NCBI GenBank assembly: GCA_904063045.1
Contig: CAJFCJ010000003.1
Span: forward strand, 2,714,504-2,778,503
Source: Dimorphilus gyrociliatus
Lineage: Eukaryota; Animalia; Annelida
DNA: 64,000 nucleotides
Direction: 5' to 3'
Below, one piece after another: positions 28,940 through 42,800 of the stretch (position 1 is the first letter of the stretch; the number at the start of each line of letters is the position of its first letter). Under the pieces are notes generated by a model, which ran no database searches, had not been told where the DNA came from, and was given only the letters and a program-made list of their open reading frames with translations. A program made the translations under genes and the position numbers.

Positions 28940-30952
28940 TTATTTTCTTCTTAATGAGTTCATAGGAGTAGATGACGATGTACCTGGTATACTAAGACTT
29001 CTAGGTAATGCCTTAGGTGTGTCTCTTATTGAGAAATAAGTTCTTGGAATTCCACCTCCGGTTGCCATTTTACTTCCATTTCCAGTTTCGAAATTTCTTA
29101 ATTGACAATTAGGACATACATTTTTATAGTTCTGACTACTCTCTTTCTTAATTTTATCTTTTTCAATCTTATTTAAATGCTCTTGTTTAGTCTTTTTACA
29201 ACAGAGGCAAATACAATTTAATAGAATTAAAAGAACAAGTAGTATCGTATTTAGTATTAACCAAATAAAGAGTCCCTTGAATAATTCGGAACTATTAATA
29301 ATATCAAGGAAACCTAAGGAAAGAAGAAGAAATGTAAATTTTTATCCATCAATTATTTAAAGTACATATTCTTTATTACCTCCACCTTGGAATATTTTCA
29401 TTATTTTACCTAGTGGATTGCTGGGTGGCCTCATTTTCTTGCAAGTTGGTAAATCAATTTTCTTGTTTCCTTTACAAATAATTACTTACATTTATATTAC
29501 TATACAAGTATATAATATATCTCATAACTACTACTAAATTTTTTATAGTAACCTGATTTAAAAGTAAAACCAATATAAAATCGATATGGAAAGTTGATCT
29601 TATTGAATTTAATTCCAGTTTTTTTTTTCAACTCCTTTTCTTCAGCAACGTATACATCGGAACCCTTTCCAGTCTTATACGCAATAAGACCTTGAACATT
29701 TTTATTATAATAGCTAATAATATCCCCTCTCTGTAGCTTAATTTGTTGTTGTTTGCATAAAGTTACCTTTGATGTTAATGTTTTGTTTCGGAATAAATTA
29801 CAATAATTAATTCCTGTATTCTTATTTTATTTAAAACAGTGAAAAAAACCTTTTTTTCTCCTTTTTTTGTAGAAGAAACGGTAACGTTACCAATGATTTG
29901 TAAAAGCCCACCAGTAATTGTACTTTGATTGGGGCGTTTTCTCAAAAAGAATATATCTACAGAACCTCCATTAGCAAACCCAATCCATATTTGTGTAACA
30001 ACAGCATTGTGATAAACTGTTAAATCTTTTATAAGAAATATCTTGTTTGCTCCAGAAGATATAAAATTATCTAATGATGACGCTTTATATCCCAGAGAAG
30101 TTCCATATATAGGATTATCTGTTGACGAAGGAAATATCTCTAAATCAGCTTCTGTAGTTAACTCTGAATGAAAAAAGAATATAAAAGCTATATTACTATA
30201 GACTGTAATGCATAAGGCAAACTCTTAACTTGTCTCATAGAATGCCTCGATAGAAAAATCCAAATTCAACGGAGAACTTGAAAATTCTAATGTCATACCA
30301 ACTTTTGTATCAAAACCTTGCTGTAACGTCTACAATTCAAGATAATTAATGTCATTTGAACGAAATATGTATATTTATGTCTTTACTGGCGTGGTAAGTG
30401 GATAAGTTATAGCTGATTCTCCAGTTTTTATAATTCTATATGCTAAACAATCTTTATCCTGTTCATTATAAAATCCTAATATATCAACAGAGAGGAGTTT
30501 AACAGGCACTTCTGGAACAATCTGCGTATAATAATCTATACTAGATTATCGTTTTTTTTATAGAAGAAATGAACTGTATATTTTACAAACATCTACTATT
30601 GCTGGAAAACTTTCGACAGTTTCACTTTTCTGCCAAATTAATGTCATTTGTCGTCGCCCATCGGAATGAGATGTTACCAATCGCCAAATTTGGAATCTAA
30701 TTCTTCCAGCAGCAACGAATTTAGCTCTTATCTTTGTAAGTGTACCACCCGTAAAAGTTCTATCAGAAAGCATGAAAATTCCTCTAGAATTTGAACTTCG
30801 TCCAGCATCCGTTTCCAATTGTCTTCCCAAGCGCAATTCCATTGCTAAATATATCATAATTTTAAATAAACCTACATATTTTTCATGATAAATAATTAAC
30901 TATTACCGTAATTAATAATAAACAAATTAAGAAGTATTATATAGAATCTCAT
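28940..30952 (-). CDS. Uncharacterised type I membrane protein: signal peptide, two tandem homologous beta-rich extracellular domains, TM helix, Cys-rich juxtamembrane segment, ~90-aa cytoplasmic tail
   Basis: Exon 1 MRFYIILLNLFIINY(A) at 30952, 62-nt intron, then exons in consistent phase. Repeat 1: GIFMLSDRTFTGGTLTKIRAKFVAAGRIRFQIWR..VKLLSVDILGFYNEQDKDCLAYR. Repeat 2: KIFLIKDLTVYHNAVVTQIWIGFANGGSVDIFFLR..IKLQRGDIISYYNKNVQGLIAYK. TM: LFIWLILNTILLVLLILLNCICLCCKK. Stop at 28940. Confidence 0.8.
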
Positions 30953-31761
30953 GGTTCTGATAACTTCGTTAAACGCATTTAAACTGAAAAACTTTTAAAC
31001 TAGAACTTTTAACTAATCATTAGTAAATACTGTAAAACGATATAATTACAATATAAAGCTACCACGTAATAGCTAAAAAGTTCAATATAATTAAGTGTCT
31101 TAATATATTAAAATTATTAGAATAGTAAAGTTTTGCATCTCATATTAGTTTTCATTATCTGCTACATAAAAAATTTGGATATAGGCCACAGGACATGCAA
31201 ATTATTAGGTAATTGTAGTAAACACATTCCCTAATATCACTAAAAATTAGAAAACCTTTAAATAATTAATTAATTGTAACGAAACAATATGAAAAATTAG
31301 TTAAAAGTAGATAATTACATTCTAATACGATTGAAAAATTATAGAATTTATTTTCTTTAAAAAAAACAGAAACTGAATATAGGTATTTTAGTAATTTTTT
31401 GCGAAACTATAAGTTCATATTCTAGAACACTTTTTTATTTCATGATTCATAAGTTTCTATATTGTGAAATCATCATATTAGTAAGAAAAAATCAATACTA
31501 ATTACATTTTACTTTAGATTATATAAATAAGGCACTTCACAATCAGTTTACTTCATATCGATTACGTAAAAAAATGAAAGAACACGTAATTACATTTGCT
31601 ATTTTACATTATCTATGGCCTAAATGTTAAAAAAATGTTAAGTAATCGATTAAAAAAACCTATCATCGTGAAAAATATTTCAAGTTATTTCGGGAAACCG
31701 AAAGTGTTAGCTACTATATAAAGCAATAATTTAGATAGATCTTATTTTATTGAAATACAAC

Positions 31762-32413
31762 ATGGGAGGATGGCTCAGTAGATTTTATGATGAAGAAGAA
31801 GAGGTTCCTCAGCCTCAACAGATCCAAAGATCAAGAACTATCCCTTATAGTGACGCTTCAGCTGCTATATCCACTCCGATACAATTTTCGTTAGGTAGAG
31901 AAAGTTTCCATGCCGCTGTTGAACCTCATAAAGAATATGCGCATTTCGCAATTGAAGATGTGTATACTTGGAGAGATAATACTTCGCATAGAATTTCGCC
32001 CCTTCATATTCGATACTCACAGGATGCAATATTTTATAAATTTCAAGCGAAAGATCATAGAGCCATGAAAGAGATAGCTACAGTTGCCGAGGATTTAATA
32101 ACGGGATATATAAAAGTTTCAGATTTTCCCAAAATTAAAGTTATCTTGTTTGAAGGAAATTTACATAGTCTAGACAATAGAAGATTGTGGGTTTTCAAAC
32201 AATATCAAAAATACAAACAAGACTTAGAAATCGATGTAAGATTTTTTTTATTAATTGTATTTTGCTATTATTTTATTTTAGCCTTTTCTTATAAATTATC
32301 TATTTATACAGGTGATATTCTGTACTAAAGTTCTTCCTCATCAATACAAAAAGTTCACTACAAGGAATTCTGGACGTTCTATTAACGTTGTGAAAAGCAT
32401 AAATCATGAATGA
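31762..32413 (+). CDS. ParB/Sulfiredoxin-fold-like protein (DNRRL motif), paralog 1, 191 aa, 2 exons
   Basis: ATG in caacATGG context; exon 1 31762-32235, intron 32236-32311, exon 2 32312-32413. Motifs ISPLHIRYSQDAI..FPKIKV..HSLDNRRLWVFKQY..KFTTRNSGRSI. The gene model is firm; the fold call comes from motif recall only. Confidence 0.75.
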
Positions 32414-32737
32414 AGATGCATGAAGTCAGTTTGGAAACCAAAGAGGCTGATTATCCTAATTTCTTTTTAGAAATATATAACATTTCTTAATAGTTCTTTC
32501 AATGATTCAATAAACTTTAAATGAATAAAACGGCTCAAATACACATTTTACTTTACTTTCAAATCTTTTCAAAGTTATTTAAGAATAACAGCTTTTGCTT
32601 TACTACGAAATATTGATTAATAATGGCCTATAGAGAAATAAGCCTATCATTCTTGTTTCGTTTCTCAAAAATGAAAATTTTAGAAAACATTATGAAAGTA
32701 GAGATTTTAGCAGTGACTTTCCTTTCTTGTCTCAGCA

Positions 32738-33595
32738 ATGGGGGGACAGCTATGTTGCTATAAAAGTAGAAAGGATGAAAGGAGTAACAATTTCAATCAT
32801 CAGAGTGATAACCATAATGTGCTTGATAGACCAGCTCCAATACTACATAATCAAGTAAGAAGATCACAACAGCCTGTCATCAGAAAGTTGTACCAAGAAG
32901 ATTCACCTCTTGAAACACCTAATTTCGATAATGCGAGAGTATCGAATGACACAAGCAGAAGTTGTCACGTTGATAATTCGTACTTAAATTATTCACCTGG
33001 AATTTTTCTGCCAAAAATACATCAAAATGCAAGAACTACCTCCCAATACACTACTAGAAACTGGAAAATAGTATATTCGGATATAAAGGTTATCGCAGAT
33101 GAGAGTGACGGTAGCAATTTAGACTCTCCGGGAGAATTTTCTATCGAACAAATTAAAAATTGGAGGTATAATAATCTATATGATATTTCTCCAGCCCATC
33201 TCCGATTTTGTCAGGATACAATATTTTACAAATTTCAAGCAAAGTCCCATACAGATATGAAAACAATTAAGTCGGTTCTTGAGAGTTTATTAAATGGTGA
33301 ATGTAAAATTTCGGATTTCCCCCCAATTCAAGTGGTTTTAAAAGAAAACTTGCTATATACACTCGATAATAGGAGATTATGGCTTTTTAAGCAATATCAG
33401 AAACAGCATAAAGATATCATGATAAAGGTATTTTTTATGTTAGTTTAAACGTTAATTAGCTATATCATTAATACATATACTGTATAGGTTGAATACCTTG
33501 AACTAACCTCTAAACATCAACTCAAATTTACGACGAAAAATAAAGGATCGTCAATCAAAATTGAAAGAAAACCCAAACACAGCCGTAGACAATAG
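32738..33595 (+). CDS. ParB/Sulfiredoxin-fold-like protein (DNRRL motif), paralog 2, 265 aa, 2 exons
   Basis: Exon 1 32738-33427, intron 33428-33487, exon 2 33488-33595. Motifs ISPAHLRFCQDTI..FPPIQV..YTLDNRRLWLFKQY..KFTTKNKGSSI. Same phase-0 intron position as paralog 1. Confidence 0.75.
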
Positions 33596-33837
33596 AATAA
33601 ACTTCAGCTATTAAGTGTTTCTCCATTAGATTTTTTTAAAGATCTAAATTTATATTTGTTAAAGTACAACTAATTGAAATTACTGAAAGAATACAGTGAT
33701 TATAAATGAATACATAAGTGTATCTTTTTTCATAAAACTATCCTTATAATTGCTTTGAATATATTGAAAATAACAGCAGTAATATTTAAAATAAAGAAGA
33801 GACAAAGGTAACAATTTTTATTTTGACTAATCACTTT

Positions 33838-36800
33838 CTAAATTGTGCATTTATCGACTCCAGCACCGTCTAAAGCTTCCTTTGATAAATTTAACGTATT
33901 AAATACACCAGGTTCAACGGCAATTCGAACTTGATATAAGCATCCATTTAATCCAGTTTTAAACAACTGCTTAGTAGATAAGCTAACCCTTTCTCTGTCT
34001 CCTCCTATATAGTTTATAGAATATTTTTAATTGAAAATATTTATGATCAATATTTTATTATAATTTACCAAAGATGACTGGCGAATTATCAGCAAAATTG
34101 ATACTTTCCCCTGAATAAACACCTTGGAATCTTGTTGTTCGCCCTGAAGTCTCAGTCAATTCAAGTGATATAGCTTGACTATATCTTTAACGAATATATA
34201 GTATACAGTACAATTATATATACTTAATAAAAGTATATGTTCTACTTACTTAGAGACTGTAATTTGAATAAACCGTCCGATTTCAATACTAATATTAGTA
34301 GAAATAGAAGCGGCACCATTGTTTAGTTTAGATCTACAAAATTTAATAAAAGTTATCTTCAATTGTGTTTACAATCGATCAGTATATTTAACTGACCGAA
34401 ATATTATCTTTCTCTCCTTTATTCCTAAAGCTATATATTCTTTATCAATTCTACCTCTCCACATTATCAATTGATCTTCTCTACTATTTGTCTTAAATAT
34501 TATTTCAACAGCGGAATGAGTTGTCCTGAAAGTAGCCAATTCTTAGTTTACCTTTAAATAGACTAAGGGTCTGTTAATTTTTAAAATTTGTCTTACCCAA
34601 ATATATTATTCTTATATGCTAGAAATCCATAACCATTCATTGAAATAATATTAGATGCAGACATTGCTGTATATGTGTTGAAAGCTACAGTTTTCAGTGT
34701 ATTTGTGTAAAGTATACAAACCCAATTCGCATTTTTCACCAGTAAATCCAAGGGGACATCTACACCATGGCTTTGAATTTATGGTTATACAAACTCCTTT
34801 ATTTGAACAAGGTTTTGAGCAATCTGAATTTAGGCAAAGACTCCCTAATCGTCCAACTGGACATACGCATTCATAGCCATTCTCAAATTTTAAACACTGG
34901 GCAGAAGAATGGCATAGGTTCTCATCACAGCCTTTTGTAGGGCAATTCGTTACACCACGTCCTTTCCTGACAGCTTGGCGATTATCATTCAGTTTAATGT
35001 TTCTAAAGCATCCATTAAATCCTTAATAAAGTACAAGTATTCTAAATATAAAAATATGTCCTAGATATTGATCTAACATTTACCCTTTCCAGCGCTATCT
35101 TTTTCTAATTCCGGGAAACTGTGTAATTTTGGTACTCCTCCAAAGAATACAGGAAATTTAGGTGTAAATAATGATATATCGAATCTATAAATAGTATTCT
35201 GCAAATTCAGCACTGATAATAATAGATAATAGAACAAACCTTTTCTTTAAATCTATATATCCTCTAACGATAGCTGTTATGCTAGTATTATCGAACAAAA
35301 TATTAATATATAACCAAGAATTTAAGCGAATATTTTGAATATCGGTCGACCAAACTTGATTTTCATTGAATAACTTTAAACTAAGTAAATCTGCCCTCAA
35401 TAAACCAACTAAAAATAGTTATTTTTACATAATAAATTTAGCATCTTTTGATTAAATAAAAAATACTAACCAAAGTAATTTTTACTTGTACCAAAAAACA
35501 AAAGAATTCCATTCGCCTGTTCAGGTTTTATCTCGAATGATATTTCTGTTTTAATATTGATTATAACATTTTCAATTTCAATATATCCTCCCCCTGAAAG
35601 TCTTGGTGTGTCTATTGTTGTTCTTGTACTGCAATCGCTTCCGATAAAACCAATATTGCATATACATTCACTTTGTGTTTTACCATTGAATTGGCAAGTA
35701 CCACTGACACAATTGATATTACAAGGACGATTCGAACAGGTGTTTATTGATTGAGAAGTAATAAATTTTGATTCATCCAACGATGCCCAATTGTTTTCAA
35801 GACTAACCTAAAAAAATTTGATGATATGTTAAATAGAGAATCAACAATTAATAATAATTAATCAAAAAGAAAATAGTAATTACATATATATTACTAATGC
35901 AGCCTTCTAAACCATTAATTAACGGCAAACTCTTTAAAATTTGATGATCATAGGCCTGATAACCGCCTATATAACATTCTAATTTTTTGGCCAAGAGCGT
36001 TTCTAGTCCCGGAGTTTGACCTTGTACTTCGATAAGATCATTTAAGTATATAATTAAAAGTTTTTTCTCCTTAACAACTTTTAATTTTAGAAAAGTATTT
36101 AATGGTAAAAGATTCCTTCCCTGTAAATTTATTGGACCAGGACCTATTTAAATGAAAGAAATCAAAGTTAGGAGATTGTAAAGATTTAATTAATCACAAT
36201 TAATTATATAATACTTATATTATTATTATCTATGTCATATCTCAAGATTAATGATACTAATCTATTAAACTATTAAAAATAAAAATATTGACAATACCTA
36301 AGTTCATTGACGCTATTAGGTATCGATTACTAACACCAAACACCAAATAACTCTTTTCTAAATCTCCTGCAAGTGCGATAAGGCCAGATGACGATGATAT
36401 TTGAAAATCCATTTCCATAGCAAAATTGTTAACATTATCGTTCGTAATGGAAAAGCTCATAAAACTATTTCCAGTAAGAGATGGATTAAAATTTGACGTT
36501 GCCACTGATAAATAATAATAATAATAATGCATTCCAAACGTTTTACTTTTAAACTATGATATATACCTGTTGAGCAATTTTTTCCAATGTACGTTGAAGG
36601 ACATACGCAAAGATAAGCACCACCTGATCCAGGTTTACAAGAACCTCTTAAACAAGGTGAATTATCGCATATGGATTTTTCACAAAAAACTCCGCTATAA
36701 CCATCTTTACAATTGCATCTAAACGACGTTGGGGACAAGTTCACACACACTCCATTGTTCTGACAATTTACATTATCGCATGCTCTTATGAGAATAGAGC

Positions 36801-39800
36801 AAGTAAAGCCAGTGTAATCCGATGGACAAATACATCTATCCAAAGGCTAAATATATTAATATATTTCAATAAAAATCGCAAACGTACTTAAGTCCACTAT
36901 TATTATTTTGGCATGTTGAGCCATTCTCACAAGGATTATTCTCACCGCAATAATCTTTTAGTTGACATTCATTACCATAATAAAAATTTGAACAAAGGCA
37001 AGTATATTGTGTCCCGGCCAAGTTGTTAGGTAATGGTAAACACGTTCCCAAATTTTTACAAGGTTTATGACCACAACGATCCACTTCTGCACAATTTGTT
37101 CCCTTAAACCCAATTGCACATGCGCATCTGTATATAAATATGCAAATATAATTATATTAGTATATATTAAAGATATTATGTAAATTAAATTGAAAGTACA
37201 AGTAGAAATTAAATATCTACTTAAAAGAATTAACACCATCTATGCATGTTCCACCATTTTTACACTTTTCCCCTTGAAGGCATTCATTTATCTCTAATTC
37301 ACAAAGTTTTCCAGTAAAGCCTATACAAAAGACATTTTTTCGGGTTTTTATTAAACAAAGAAATTTTAATTAACCAACCTTTCATACAATTACAACTATA
37401 ACTTGTCACAGTTTCCAGGCAAGTAGCGTTATTTTTACATGGAGTTGAATAGCAAGCGGGAAGTGAATTTTCACATTGACTACCCGTAAATCCTGGTTTA
37501 CAGATGCAATAAGAAGAATCGTCTATTCTTCTTTTGCAAACTCCATTATTTTTACATCTCGTACTAGCTATATATTTTTTAAGTATTATAACAATTTTCC
37601 CTAAAGAGAATTATATATTCTATTTATTTACCGAAACATGGATCAACATTTTGGCAATTTCTTCCCAGAAAACCAGGAGGACAGTTGCAACTATAGTTTC
37701 CCGCATCATTTGAATTTACAATACATTCACCACCATTGCATGGATTCACAGGGGAGCATGGATTAGGTTTAGTAATTTGACATTTATCGCCCTATTTTAT
37801 ATCAGTTGAGTTATAATTTGATTGTTTCTTTCGTAAATTCTTACCGTAAATCCAGATTTACAATCACAAAAAACCTGATTTCTCAATAACCAACAAGTTC
37901 CACCATTGAAACAGGTTTGAGGTTTACACAAATCCCTTTTAATTTGACAAAATAAACCTTCAAAGTCGTTCGAGCATGAGCAGAATACGCCAATTGAATC
38001 TGAATAACAAGTACCCCCATTTTGACAAATTGACGGAGAACATGTTTTTATCTCCTCGGCGCAGAAATCCCCAGCATAAGGTGGTTGACAAGCGCAAAAA
38101 ATCCTGTTTCCATTAACCAAGCATCTTCCGCCATTTCTACATGGTTGTGAATTGCATAAAGATGGATTTGTTTCACAACGCTGACCTTCAAAAGGTTTTG
38201 GGCAATTGCATGTAAAACTATCAACTCCAACCTGAATACATGTCCCAGAATTGTAACAGGGATTAGGATTACACGAGGAAATCAACTTTTCGCATCTCTT
38301 CCCTTCAAAATATTCCGAACAGTTGCACCTATGTAAGATTCCTTCTAGAAGATAACACTACGACAATGAATAGAAAAAAAAAGTAACCCACTTAAAATCA
38401 TTATCTCCAATATTTTCACAAAATCGAGGATTATTGAGGCAAGGTTTTGCATCACACGGTGGCTGTTTATCAGAGCACGTTAATCCTATTAATTGATGGA
38501 AAACATTTACTGTTTACTATAAAATACTATTAAATAGAAGAAAATTTATACCCTTAAATCCAATGTTACATTGGCATTGAGAATTCTGACAATTTCCATT
38601 GAAACACGTATCTTTATCGCAAACTAATGGAGTACTGCAATTTTTACCAGTAAATTTAGGTTTACATGAACAAGAATAATCAGCACCATTTGCTAGATTA
38701 ATACATTCACCAAATTTACAAGGTTTGGTTAAACAGGAATATTTTTTATCACAAAGTAATCCAGTAAAGTTTGATGGACAAGAACAAGTAAATGAATTAC
38801 CAATATTTCTGCAAGTAGCTCCATTCTTACAAGGTGAACTACCGCAAGGTATTGGAATTTGACAAAATTGACCTCCCCAAAGTTGAGTACAATTACATCT
38901 ATTAAAGGTTTATATTTATGTGAAGGTAGTTAAAAATTATTAAATTGAATATATAAAACTTACGAAAATGACGATTCATGATTTATGCATTTGCCACCAT
39001 TTTTACAGGGTGTGCTTGAACAGTAGTTATATTGAGAACAATCTTTACCAATAAACGCTGATGTACATTGACAACTATAATCCAAATCTTTTTTTTGGCA
39101 TTTTCCACCATTTTTACATGGTTTTAATAAACATCTATTGATATCGCTGCATCTTTGTCCAACGTAGGGCGGTGTGCAATTACACTATTATTGGGTATAA
39201 AAAAAATAAAACGAAGGTATACTTAGTTTTTAGCTACGCATAATTTTATCTACATGTACTCCAGATAATGCAATAATCCCTGTTATCACCATCTGTTACA
39301 CTTATGGCACGTGAAGAGAAAAAAAGCTTGGATCAAACATAGGACTGATAAGGTCGAAGACTTGAGTATAAGTATGATAAATTGTGCTGACAAACTTGCT
39401 TTTAATTAGTTTAGGTCAAACTAACGTCTTGAAAGGAATGTTAGAATGGAAAACGAATGGAATATTAATAAATCATACGCTTTCATTCAAGATTCTGATT
39501 ATACGTCGGGACGTCGTTATTTTTTCACTTTTTTTAGTCAATTTGGTCCTCGTTCAGTATCAACTATAGTCATTGAATTATTCTTTTTATTCTTTATCAA
39601 ATTCTTAGGATTTTCATTAAATATCTTTCATTTTGTCGTTCTTTGGAAGCATAGAAAGCCTGCTTCGGTAAGCATAATTCTGGAAATGAATCTCTGCTTT
39701 TCAAGCTTTCTTGGTTGTGTTCCGTTAATCTTAATTTCTATTACAAGAATATATAAAAGATGGATTTTTCATCAATTCTTTTGTAGTTTTTTAGTATTTG

Positions 39801-42800
39801 GGATTTTCCTTTGCTATTGCTTTACTGCTTGGATTTTAACTGCGATTGTAGTTGATCGTTCAAGGTTTGTAAGAAGAAAAATGGGTGGACGTTTACCATT
39901 AAGTTTTAAGTGGTCGAAGAGAATGGTTTCTATAATCTGGATAATGGGTGTTGTTGGAACATCTCCAATGGGAATATTTTTTAGGAACAAATCAGTTCTG
40001 ATCAACGAAAGAGAGTTAACAATTTGCACTTTAATATGGCCAAAAACTGCAATAGGTGTCAGTTTATTAATAGTAATAGTTACTGTAACCGTTACCATGT
40101 TACTTCCTCTAGTAATAATCATCTATAGCTATGCAAGAATTATCAACGTACTAAAGAAATTAAGGAAGAGAAATCGAGAAGTTCTTACTGATTTTCAGCA
40201 AGCCCAACATATGAAAGAAAAGATTATGGCTAAACTATTATTAGCTATGATATTGAGCTTCTTTTTAACTTGGATACCAATATTTTCATTATTTTTTGTT
40301 CTGCTTTACGATTCTATTACTCAGAAATTATTAGCAACTTCAGTATTGATGGTTGTTACTACTTTAATAGCCCTATCTAATTCCATATCAATACCATTAA
40401 TTTATGGAAGTTTAACTGGAAAATTCAAATTAAAAAGATTGACTGAAGCAGTCCAGTTTATACATTCTAAAATAAGGAATATACGAAAAGATGGTAGAAA
40501 GATAAGCAATGTTATAAGTAGTTCCTCTCAGAGTTGAATAATCAATAGAAATATAAATATGAACTTACCCTAAAAGAACTTGAGCCGAGAGGTTCGCATA
40601 CTCCAGAATTAAAGCATGGATTATTTTGGCAAATTCTTGCAATTCCACAATCCTTTCCAACGAATTCTGATAGGCAGTTGCACTCGTAATCGTCAGAACC
40701 TTTAGGTCTTTTATGAATAGAAGATACGTGTTTTAAAAGTATATATATATATATATATATACGAAAATTATGAATAAAAAATAAATTTCAACCTGCATGT
40801 TCCTCCATTTTTACACGGCTGAACAACGCACGGTATATAACTTGAGCAATCCTTACCAGAGTAACCCTTAAGACATTCACAAGCATAGTCGTTTTGTCCA
40901 ACATTTAAGCATTTTCCATTATTTTTACAAGGTGACGAACTACACTTTAATGTTATTTCGCATTGTCGACCGGAAACATTAGGTTTACATTGACAGATGT
41001 AAAATGGTTCTTTGGAGGATTCAATACAAAATCCATCATTCTTACACGGTGTAGAAGAACAGTATAAAAATTTTTCACAATTGACACCTTCAATTTTGAA
41101 ACATTTTCTTTGTATTATGTAATACTCAAGTGTACGTAACTACCTGTATAATTTGAATGGCATTTACATTCAAAATCGTCACCTTTTGAGGTGCATGTAC
41201 CTCCATTAGAGCAAGGGTTACCGGCACATGAAAGGAATTTTTCACACCTTGAGCCAGTGTAATTTGTGGGACAAGTACAAAAGAATTTATTGTCTTTTAC
41301 TGAACAACTTCCTCTCAAACAAGGCAAACTTAGGCATGGGTCGTAATCTTCGCAACGATTTCCTTTATAGTTTTGGGGACATTTACAACTAGAAAACGGA
41401 AATAACTATTTAATTACTTCGAAATAAAATCATGCATGTCTGTTACCTATATTTTGAATCCTCCTTTACACATTTTCCATTGTTCAAGCATGGTTTCAAG
41501 GAGCAAGAATCAAATAAATCGCAATAAGTTCCGTAATAATTAGATTTACATTTACATTCGAAATTTTTACCATTAGCAATACAGTCTCCATTACTACAGG
41601 GGGAACTAGCACAGGGTTCTGCAGCTTCACAATTTCGTCCTTAAAAAACATATCATTCCAATTCAATATTAATCATTCATTTTGGATGATTAATACCTTG
41701 AAAATTTATTGGACATGTACACAAGTAATCGTTAGCTATTTGATTACAAATTCCTCTATTTTTACATGGATTGGGAGCACATGGATCAATTCTTCTTTCG
41801 CAAACATTTCCTTTTAAAAATCAATTAATCAATTAGTAAGTATATTTTTTTAACTGAATATATAGTTCTTATTTAAACAGAATATATATATATATATAAA
41901 CTATATTGGATTATAGTTATAGTAGTAATGTGTATCAATTTTTCAACCTGTAAATCCATGGTTACAATAGCATTGAAATTCATTGGGTTTCAAATTAGGG
42001 TTGCAAAATGGAACTCCCAATTTACAGCATAAACCACCATTCTTACAAGGAGAAGATGAACATGGATCTATCTCTATTTCACATTGAGATCCAGTAAAAT
42101 GTTCAGAACATTGACATTCAAATTTTCCAGGTAAATTTAGACAAGTTCCTCCTAAAATTTTAATACGTCGTTAAATAAAAAATGTTTTTCATTCTATTGT
42201 CAGTGTCATACCATTCTTGCATGGTTTCACAGCGCATTCGTCTGAATCAATTTGACATAATGAACCAGAAAATCCAGGTAAACAGAGACAAAAATGACGA
42301 TTTCCAGTAATACTAGGTGGAAAGCAGATGCCATAATTCCGGCAAGGGTCATCTGCAGGAGAGGCGATAGAGTATAGTAAGAATTTATGGTAAATTATCC
42401 ACATCAAATAGTTAGTATTATAATGATCTACTTGATAGCATACAGTATATATAGTATGTATTCAACTTATGAATGTACAGTCCCTCCCTTTAGTCCCATC
42501 TTTTCTTAAAGTACATCATTCCCTCCTTCTATCTCCCTATTACTATTCCAAGAATTTGTAAATATATTCAGCCTTTCTAAAAAAATCTACAATATGGCAT
42601 TTTTGTGTTCGTTGATAAAGTATGACTATTAATGACTATTACCTTGAACACAGAATTGATTCCTTTCACACCTTTGTCCAGCATATTGTTTAGGGCAATT
42701 ACATTTAAAAGTTTCTTTCTCTTCGACGCAGGAACCTCTGAGACAAGGATTCGATTCACAAGCTGTTAATTTTGATTCACACCTTAAACCTACAAATAGA

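Follow-up and report, generated by a model that had tools for sequence, protein, structure and literature searches.

Which protein family is encoded by two adjacent, same-strand genes of the annelid Dimorphilus gyrociliatus that share a C-terminal domain with the string DNRRL, and what might this domain do? The genes, here called A and B, lie on contig CAJFCJ010000003.1, within a stretch of 64,000 nucleotides that was analysed as a whole (the window). The preliminary description of this DNA had proposed an animal family with a ParB/Srx-like fold that is not sulfiredoxin (Srx), is related to bacterial toxin domains, and had so far gone undescribed.

The gene models rest on the sequence, its open reading frames and the RNA contigs of one public run, which behaves as a transcriptome and contains 82% of the words sampled from the region. 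The features are as follows.

31717..32543, forward strand: gene A transcript, a 774-base RNA contig joining 31717-32235 to 32312-32543, with a 5' UTR, two exons and a 3' UTR
31762..32235, forward strand: gene A exon 1, 158 codons, with the MGGWLS start, an unconserved linker and the larger part of the ParBL1 domain, which begins near 31939
31762, forward strand: gene A start codon ATG, from the listing of open reading frames
31762..31782, forward strand: gene A N-terminus MGGWLSR, which fits the N-myristoylation pattern at Gly2
32173..32187, forward strand: DNRRL of gene A, which aligns (weakly) with the Box II GxxR of ParB
32236..32311, forward strand: gene A intron, 76 bases, GT..AG, phase 0, with the RNA joint 32235->32312
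32312..32413, forward strand: gene A exon 2, 33 codons and a stop, encoding the final strand-helix-strand of the domain with KFTT.N.G.SI
32738..33427, forward strand: gene B exon 1, 230 codons, with the MGGQLCC start, a long unconserved linker and the ParBL1 domain from about 33131
32738..32758, forward strand: gene B N-terminus MGGQLCC, with the myristoylation pattern and two Cys residues (possible palmitoylation)
33365..33379, forward strand: DNRRL of gene B, read from the sequence
33428..33487, forward strand: gene B intron, 60 bases, GT..AG, phase 0, with the RNA joint 33427->33488
33488..33595, forward strand: gene B exon 2, 35 codons and a stop, with KFTTKNKGSSI, followed by a 3' UTR to at least 33710

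A and B are two native, separately transcribed two-exon genes. The RNA units are distinct, covering 31717-32543 for gene A and 32747-33710 for gene B (a contig joining 32747-33429 to 33488-33710), and the RNA contigs have no coverage between the genes, from 32553 to 32714. The splice joints and this uncovered gap reveal that the phase-0 introns are truly spliced and that the transcripts are separate. The word depth at the joints is 1456 for gene A and 338 for gene B, although depth in RNA contigs is a poor measure. The 3' UTR of gene A carries AATAAA at about 32517. The ATG of gene B is a predicted start, because its RNA contig begins at 32747, 9 bases 3' of this codon, and a pyrimidine tract followed by CAG directly precedes it at 32735, so that the 5' boundary of gene B is provisional. 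The surroundings consist of AT-rich animal DNA, and the neighbouring genes encode EGF/laminin-G and GPCR proteins. A scan for sigma-70 promoters and terminators, which is not relevant to animal DNA, stayed at chance level.

The first exons of A and B align by BLASTP in their C-terminal part only (54/98 identities, 55%, E 3e-38), with no alignment of the N-terminal parts, and both second exons carry KFTT.N.G.SI (BLASTP E 1e-5). The intron occupies the identical position within the domain in the two genes. Thus the coordinates, the DNRRL string, the unrelated N-termini and the shared C-terminal domain given in the preliminary description agree with the sequence, the reading frames and the BLASTP comparison, and its claim of native genes spliced at the same phase-0 intron is upheld by the RNA contigs.

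The public gene model of this locus, DgyrCDS2554 (401 aa, P0001), splices gene A exon 1 to the middle of gene B exon 1. This A–B joint is absent from all of the RNA contigs, although contigs can miss rare forms. DgyrCDS2554 is therefore most likely a fusion artefact that wrongly merges genes A and B, and the present locus corrects it. Gene A was analysed exon by exon, and the only joined sequence used was that of P0001 residues 275-401, which corresponds to the domain of gene B and spans its exon 1–exon 2 junction.

Structural modelling addressed the nature of the shared domain. An AF2 model based on an alignment of 125 domains reached a pLDDT of 94.3 and a pTM of 0.86, while an earlier run on three sequences with exon 1 alone (pLDDT 51.8) was discarded. 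All 50 matches listed by Foldseek against the PDB have the ParB/Srx fold (best E-value 5.8e-4, TM 0.36-0.48), and they include Srx, ParB with CDP or CTP, Noc, Atu1540, SerK, SbnI, PadC and KorB. In an independent VIA-align scan against 48,161 representative chains, only 16 chains scored a Z of at least 2, and the top 10 all belong to this fold: Atu1540 (2hwj, Z 7.8), Arabidopsis Srx (7.3), human Srx (6.0), SerK (5.9), PadC (5.9), KorB (5.5), SbnI (5.2), pNOB8 ParB (4.9), Spo0J (3.5) and Osa (3.4). Despite moderate structural scores (Z below 8), both lists are exclusive to the ParB/Srx fold, and we therefore regard this fold as established for the modelled C-terminal domain of about 120 residues, as the preliminary description had suggested.

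In the AF2 model, DNRR caps the helix that follows a beta-hairpin, a place that is presumably equivalent to that of GxxR in ParB and GCHR in Srx. A sequence-only hhalign comparison with 25 actinobacterial ParB N-domains stayed below significance (probability 0.3%); the best, likewise non-significant alignment places D-N-R-R on the G-E-R-R of Box II and pairs the RYSQDS loop with the region of Box I. The equivalences of DNRR with GxxR and of SQ with Box I are based on this weak alignment together with the order of secondary structures. No acid resembling that of the Box III motif ENLQR was identified in the domain.

Since Srx is among the best structural matches, A and B could be divergent sulfiredoxins that repair over-oxidised peroxiredoxin, and a six-frame search of the genome with PF02195 found no classical Srx, although exon splitting can hide one. 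However, the position of FGGCHR is occupied by an invariant N and not by a Cys, the domain portion encoded by gene A exon 1 lacks Cys altogether, PF02195 is silent on the domain, and the closest kin are toxins. The missing catalytic Cys of the FG/SGCHR motif contradicts a sulfiredoxin identity, which we consider highly improbable, in agreement with the earlier view that these genes do not encode Srx.

The distribution of the domain was explored with a profile of three domains, which was run against 1.84 billion representatives and recovered 810 relatives at E<=1e-3. The named animal members come from the bivalves Tegillarca, Mya, Mactra, Mytilus and Ruditapes, from Octopus, from the tunicates Styela and Clavelina, and from the ctenophore Bolinopsis; the other named eukaryotes are Rhizophagus fungi, liverworts (Marchantia) and a dinoflagellate (Amphidinium). 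The family is greatly expanded in bivalves, where many proteins carry the domain twice or three times. One bivalve protein fuses it to an HSP70-12A-like ATPase and another protein carries it with six WW domains. A Pfam scan of 10 long family members found no partner domains. The domain itself is represented by no Pfam model, and PF02195 gives no hit on it even at E<=10. Scans of the exons with Pfam, NCBIfam and PADLOC returned nothing meaningful, and the PDB chains searched by sequence and profile gave no match. Of two word searches, one recovered no relatives and the other only the genes' own public model, and a feature-based Atlas search returned mollusc clusters alone, all of them below threshold.

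The D. gyrociliatus genome (78 Mb) encodes a third paralog on another contig, paralog C, with the same intron position and an N-terminal TM helix. In this protein, DNKLL replaces DNRRL, so that RR has become KL, and the conserved Q is an N. A fourth, weaker copy has NNSTL in place of DNRRL. As judged from these substitutions, the TM-anchored paralog C, with its Q and RR lost, is probably a non-catalytic relative.

Bacterial proteins match the family profile at E 1e-17 to 1e-25. They comprise short Streptomyces and Microbulbifer proteins, fragments named as filamentous hemagglutinin, and proteins in which PT-HINT (PF07591) or PT-TG (PF14449) lies immediately N-terminal to the domain. In P0078 and P0129, an RHS core is capped C-terminally by the domain. 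A locus of Streptomyces niger encodes an RHS-type protein with a truncated, degenerate copy, and a small ORF follows this gene at the place expected for an immunity gene; beside A and B, no immunity gene was recognised. A search of the ESM Atlas by shape returned PT-HINT, RHS, MafB and PT-VENN clusters at TM 0.68-0.78 (0.69 for the MafB cluster), in addition to mollusc and cnidarian clusters. The kinship with bacterial toxin domains bearing an RFSQ...DNRR signature, which the preliminary description had anticipated, is thus supported by both profile and structure matches.

The family consensus reads L.PSEIRYSQDSI...F...IGETLDDL..G....DIP.I.V....G.W.T.DNRRLWVF...KFTT.N.G.SV.VRG.PGG. Across the 125 domains, the N (N73) and the L of DNRRL never vary, and its D, R74 and R75 are conserved in at least 90%. 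R18, S/T20, Q21, D22, S23, D72, N73, R74, R75 and L76 are conserved in the bacterial clade described below and in the remaining sequences alike, as are K105-F-T-T, N110, G112, S114 and R118. Position 20 is T in 71% and S in 26% of the bacterial clade, compared with S in 59% and T in 33% of the rest, and is S in gene A and C in gene B. Position 23 is S in 74-88%; at this site gene A encodes A and gene B encodes T. A and B nevertheless retain nearly all of the residues whose conservation across bacterial toxins and animal proteins reaches at least 90%, among them Q21, N73, R74 and R75.

These features lead to a family that was named by computational analysis. Zhang, de Souza, Anantharaman, Iyer and Aravind described Tox-ParBL1 in 2012 (Biol Direct 7:18, PMC3482391) as a predicted ParB fold with a conserved N-terminal S/T that classical ParB lacks and an [NT][RT][RT] motif, mostly RR; it is associated with HINT, FilH, RHS and MafB, its type is NGK_2271, a MafB of Neisseria, and its hosts include metazoans, fungi, plants, ciliates and kinetoplastids. 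The domain of A and B adopts the ParB/Srx-type alpha+beta fold according to AF2, Foldseek and VIA-align. Both genes carry the motif as DNRRL, aligning weakly with the GERR of ParB. The N-terminal Ser/Thr lies at position 20 of the family, and the domain occurs as a C-terminal polymorphic-toxin warhead (behind PT-HINT, PT-TG and FHA, at RHS tips, and in the MafB, RHS and PT-VENN clusters). Because the same conserved residues are found at the C-terminal tips of polymorphic toxins, the domain fits Tox-ParBL1 and homology to the bacterial warheads. The family is therefore already known computationally, with metazoans among its published hosts, and is not newly discovered; the proposal of an undescribed animal family does not hold. 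In the literature searched, apart from unrelated uses, the name appears only in the naming paper (PMC3482391). Recent surveys of the ParB fold used PF02195 (PMC12704722; bioRxiv 10.64898/2026.05.05.722872), and they miss the family because this model does not detect it. What is new here are the N-myristoylation signals, the TM paralog with a degenerate motif, the syntenic tandem pair, and a bacterial clade that stands apart from the labelled eukaryotes.

This last point emerged from an unrooted FastTree phylogeny of 255 domains, in which most tips are unlabelled. The 13 sequences labelled as bacterial all group in a single clade of 73 (support 0.966) that contains no labelled eukaryotes; Rhizophagus is sister to this clade and the labelled animals lie elsewhere in the tree. 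A and B group with four other proteins (support 0.945 for this clade of six), and within the group A pairs with P0004 and not with B. On the contig that encodes the relative P0008 (L031), a neighbouring gene matches window positions 28965-30846 at about 70% DNA identity, and P0008 is followed by a second gene, which starts with MGQLFSCC. This synteny shows that the tandem pair predates the split from the related species. The sequence of P0008 continues through an intron located where gene A has its own, and three other relatives end just past this point, which fits the same intron.

The existence of bacterial homologues raises the question of whether the genes are contaminants from bacteria or were acquired very recently by horizontal transfer. 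The spliced GT..AG introns at a conserved position and the animal context, with its EGF/laminin-G and GPCR neighbours, speak against this origin, as do the syntenic pair on L031 and the separate clade of labelled bacterial sequences. Contamination and recent transfer, to which we attach a negligible probability, are excluded by these observations, and the introns and synteny alone refute them. Being unrooted and mostly unlabelled, the tree bears on recent transfer and not on the direction of any old one.

With regard to function, the starts of A, B and their relatives fit G-{EDRKHPFYW}-x2-[STAGCN]-{P}, the PROSITE N-myristoylation pattern PS00008; this match is one of sequence, and the gene B start lies outside its RNA contig. 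The relatives P0005, P0006, P0008 and P0021 start with MGQ or MGG and have S or C at position 6, and an MG..(S/C) start is present in five of the six members of the A/B clade. Other family members, like paralog C, have N-terminal TM helices instead. The lipid-anchor signals in the A/B clade and the TM helices elsewhere suggest that the domain has repeatedly been tethered to membranes, facing the cytosol, and A and B are probably membrane-anchored through lipidation of Gly2.

In every characterised member of the ParB/Srx fold, the Box I loop and the Box II helix cap together make up the surface that holds an NTP; examples are sulfiredoxin, the ParB CTPase, SerK and SbnI, which are phosphotransferases dependent on ATP, and the ATPase toxin ToxB (PMC12704722; bioRxiv 10.64898/2026.05.05.722872). 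Given this use of NTP, and given that the family conserves residues at the two NTP-binding places of the fold, we propose that A and B are NTP enzymes. Each protein would consist of a lipid-anchor signal (Gly2, plus the Cys pair in B), a disordered linker and the C-terminal Tox-ParBL1 domain. The DNRR helix cap would hold the NTP phosphates, the R-[ST]-Q-D loop would take the place of ParB Box I, and the enzyme, working on the cytosolic side of a membrane, would hydrolyse the NTP or use it to phosphorylate a substrate, while paralog C would be an inactive relative. We lean, with some reserve, towards this reading of A and B as membrane-tethered NTP-binding hydrolases or phosphotransferases of the Tox-ParBL1 family. 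Its extension to eukaryotic Tox-ParBL1 as a whole is more tentative: these proteins could be NTPases or phosphotransferases with a ParB fold and a lipid or TM anchor that act on the cytosolic side of membranes, a so far overlooked class that would correspond to the bacterial CTP/ATP switches and in which degenerate paralogs would be regulatory.

Another possibility would be that A and B are cytotoxic or nucleic-acid-degrading effectors, kept for immune defence or cell killing and restrained or localised by the anchor and the degenerate paralogs. The homology to toxin warheads, whose conserved residues are kept, is consistent with such a role, as is the nuclease activity predicted for the Tox-ParBL1 toxins (PMC3482391). 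The bivalve expansion points in the same direction, with its two or three tandem domains and the fusion to an HSP70-12A-like ATPase, a family that is itself expanded in bivalves (PMC10939072, PMC11268181). However, A and B have no signal peptide, no nuclease-type metal site was recognised in them, and the tandem pair is syntenic in a relative. Their word depth in the one RNA run is high, with no sign of induction, although depth is a poor measure, and ToxB, the only ParB-fold toxin tested, is an ATPase and not a nuclease. We consider an effector role unlikely. Less probable still is a non-catalytic binding role, in which the domain of A and B would serve as a pseudoenzyme or adaptor and hold a partner at membranes. 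Paralog C and the fourth copy tolerate the loss of the motif, and no family member has a known activity, but A and B keep a near-complete conserved site, as is usual where a site is catalytic or binds a ligand.

Sulfiredoxin is usually cited as the main eukaryotic representative of the ParB/Srx fold (PMC12704722), which is currently studied as a nucleotide switch. The present locus represents a second eukaryotic branch of this fold, one that is expressed, probably membrane-anchored, and has kept the site of the toxin warheads. Its small, soluble and well-modelled domain lends itself to uncovering what Tox-ParBL1 does biochemically, in animal proteins as well as in bacterial toxins. If the proposed enzymatic function is true, finding the substrate of a eukaryotic Tox-ParBL1 would also reveal how the bacterial warhead kills.

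Among the known systems of this fold, Srx resembles A and B as a single domain of similar size (Z 6.0-7.3), with its motif at the start of the helix behind the hairpin. The motif itself differs, as FGGCHR with the catalytic Cys stands against LDNRRL, and the A/B family adds a C-terminal strand-helix-strand (KFTT.N.G.S) and the membrane-anchor signal, and escapes PF02195. The CTPase clamps ParB, Noc and KorB share the core fold, and the RR of DNRR falls on the RR of GERR, albeit in a non-significant alignment. Unlike the clamps, A and B have no HTH, dimerisation domain or ParA-binding motif, neither Box I nor Box III can be recognised in them, and the proteins end about 45 residues past DNRRL with no further domain. 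Atu1540 (PDB 2hwj), an uncharacterised Agrobacterium protein, is the top structural match, with 107 aligned residues that include the C-terminal extension, despite an identity of 11% and a longer chain.

In ToxB (CdiA; bioRxiv 10.64898/2026.05.05.722872), too, a ParB-fold domain forms the warhead at the C-terminal end of a contact-dependent toxin, and this warhead binds and hydrolyses ATP rather than cutting DNA. ToxB was found with PF02195, which misses the A/B family, and therefore belongs to the classical Tox-ParB branch. The closest counterparts are the Tox-ParBL1 toxins themselves. A and B differ from them as stand-alone, predicted cytosolic proteins with a lipid-anchor signal in place of a secretion or delivery module, and as genes that contain introns and are, judging from one RNA run, constitutively transcribed. 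The toxins and A/B have in common the ParB fold, the S/T, the N-R-R motif and the C-terminal KFTT.N.G.S block, and the published eukaryotic hosts match the relatives found here in Mytilus, Octopus, Styela, Bolinopsis, Rhizophagus, Marchantia and Amphidinium.

In the public protein model DgyrCDS2554 (401 aa), the first exon of gene A runs directly into the middle of the first exon of gene B; exon 2 of gene A and the first 22 codons of gene B are left out. Contrary to this model, the RNA contigs carry two separate spliced transcripts at window positions 31762-33595. At the 5′ end of gene B (window 32720-32747), an acceptor-like pyrimidine tract with CAG ends at 32735, 3 bases upstream of the ATG, and the RNA contig begins only at 32747, past a run of six G. 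The gene may start with a short UTR, an upstream exon or a spliced leader. The neighbours of the pair are two genes:

35466-38285, minus strand: EGF/laminin-G-type multi-exon gene
39446-40537, plus strand: GPCR

No functional connection of either gene with genes A and B is evident.

The surroundings of the pair were also found in a related species:

L031:1-5351, Logan contig of SRR23372228: syntenic locus

There, a neighbouring gene matches window 28965-30846 (about 70% DNA identity). After it come the gene of the family protein P0008, which begins MGQKFSC..., and another whose product begins MGQLFSCC, so the tandem pair is conserved at this locus.

Within the Dimorphilus genome, two further family members were located:

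L003:1043-1930, contig C7, about 687746-688633: third paralog
L037:1420-1734, contig C19: fourth, weak member (E 0.0016)

The third paralog has a transmembrane helix at its N-terminus and reads DNKLL where genes A and B have DNRRL, while its intron lies after the domain core, at the same position as in the pair; P0003, another family protein, is its orthologue-like relative. The fourth copy reads PSSIHF...LLYTLNNSTL, and has therefore lost the motif. A six-frame search of the whole genome with the Pfam model PF02195 revealed no classical sulfiredoxin or ParB domain, although exon splitting could hide one.

In bivalves (P0089, P0121, P0002 and P0010), the domain occurs in other architectures. 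There is an N-terminal fusion to an HSP70-12A-like ATPase in Mactra and, in another protein, a C-terminal fusion to six WW domains; two or three tandem copies also occur in one chain. On the bacterial side, the domain was found in part at the end of an RHS-type protein:

L004:4383-5455, Streptomyces niger NZ_JOFQ01000023.1: RHS-type protein tip

Of the domain, this tip carries just the second half, in which the motif reads DNRM, and a 104-codon ORF directly follows the RHS-type gene, where an immunity gene would stand.
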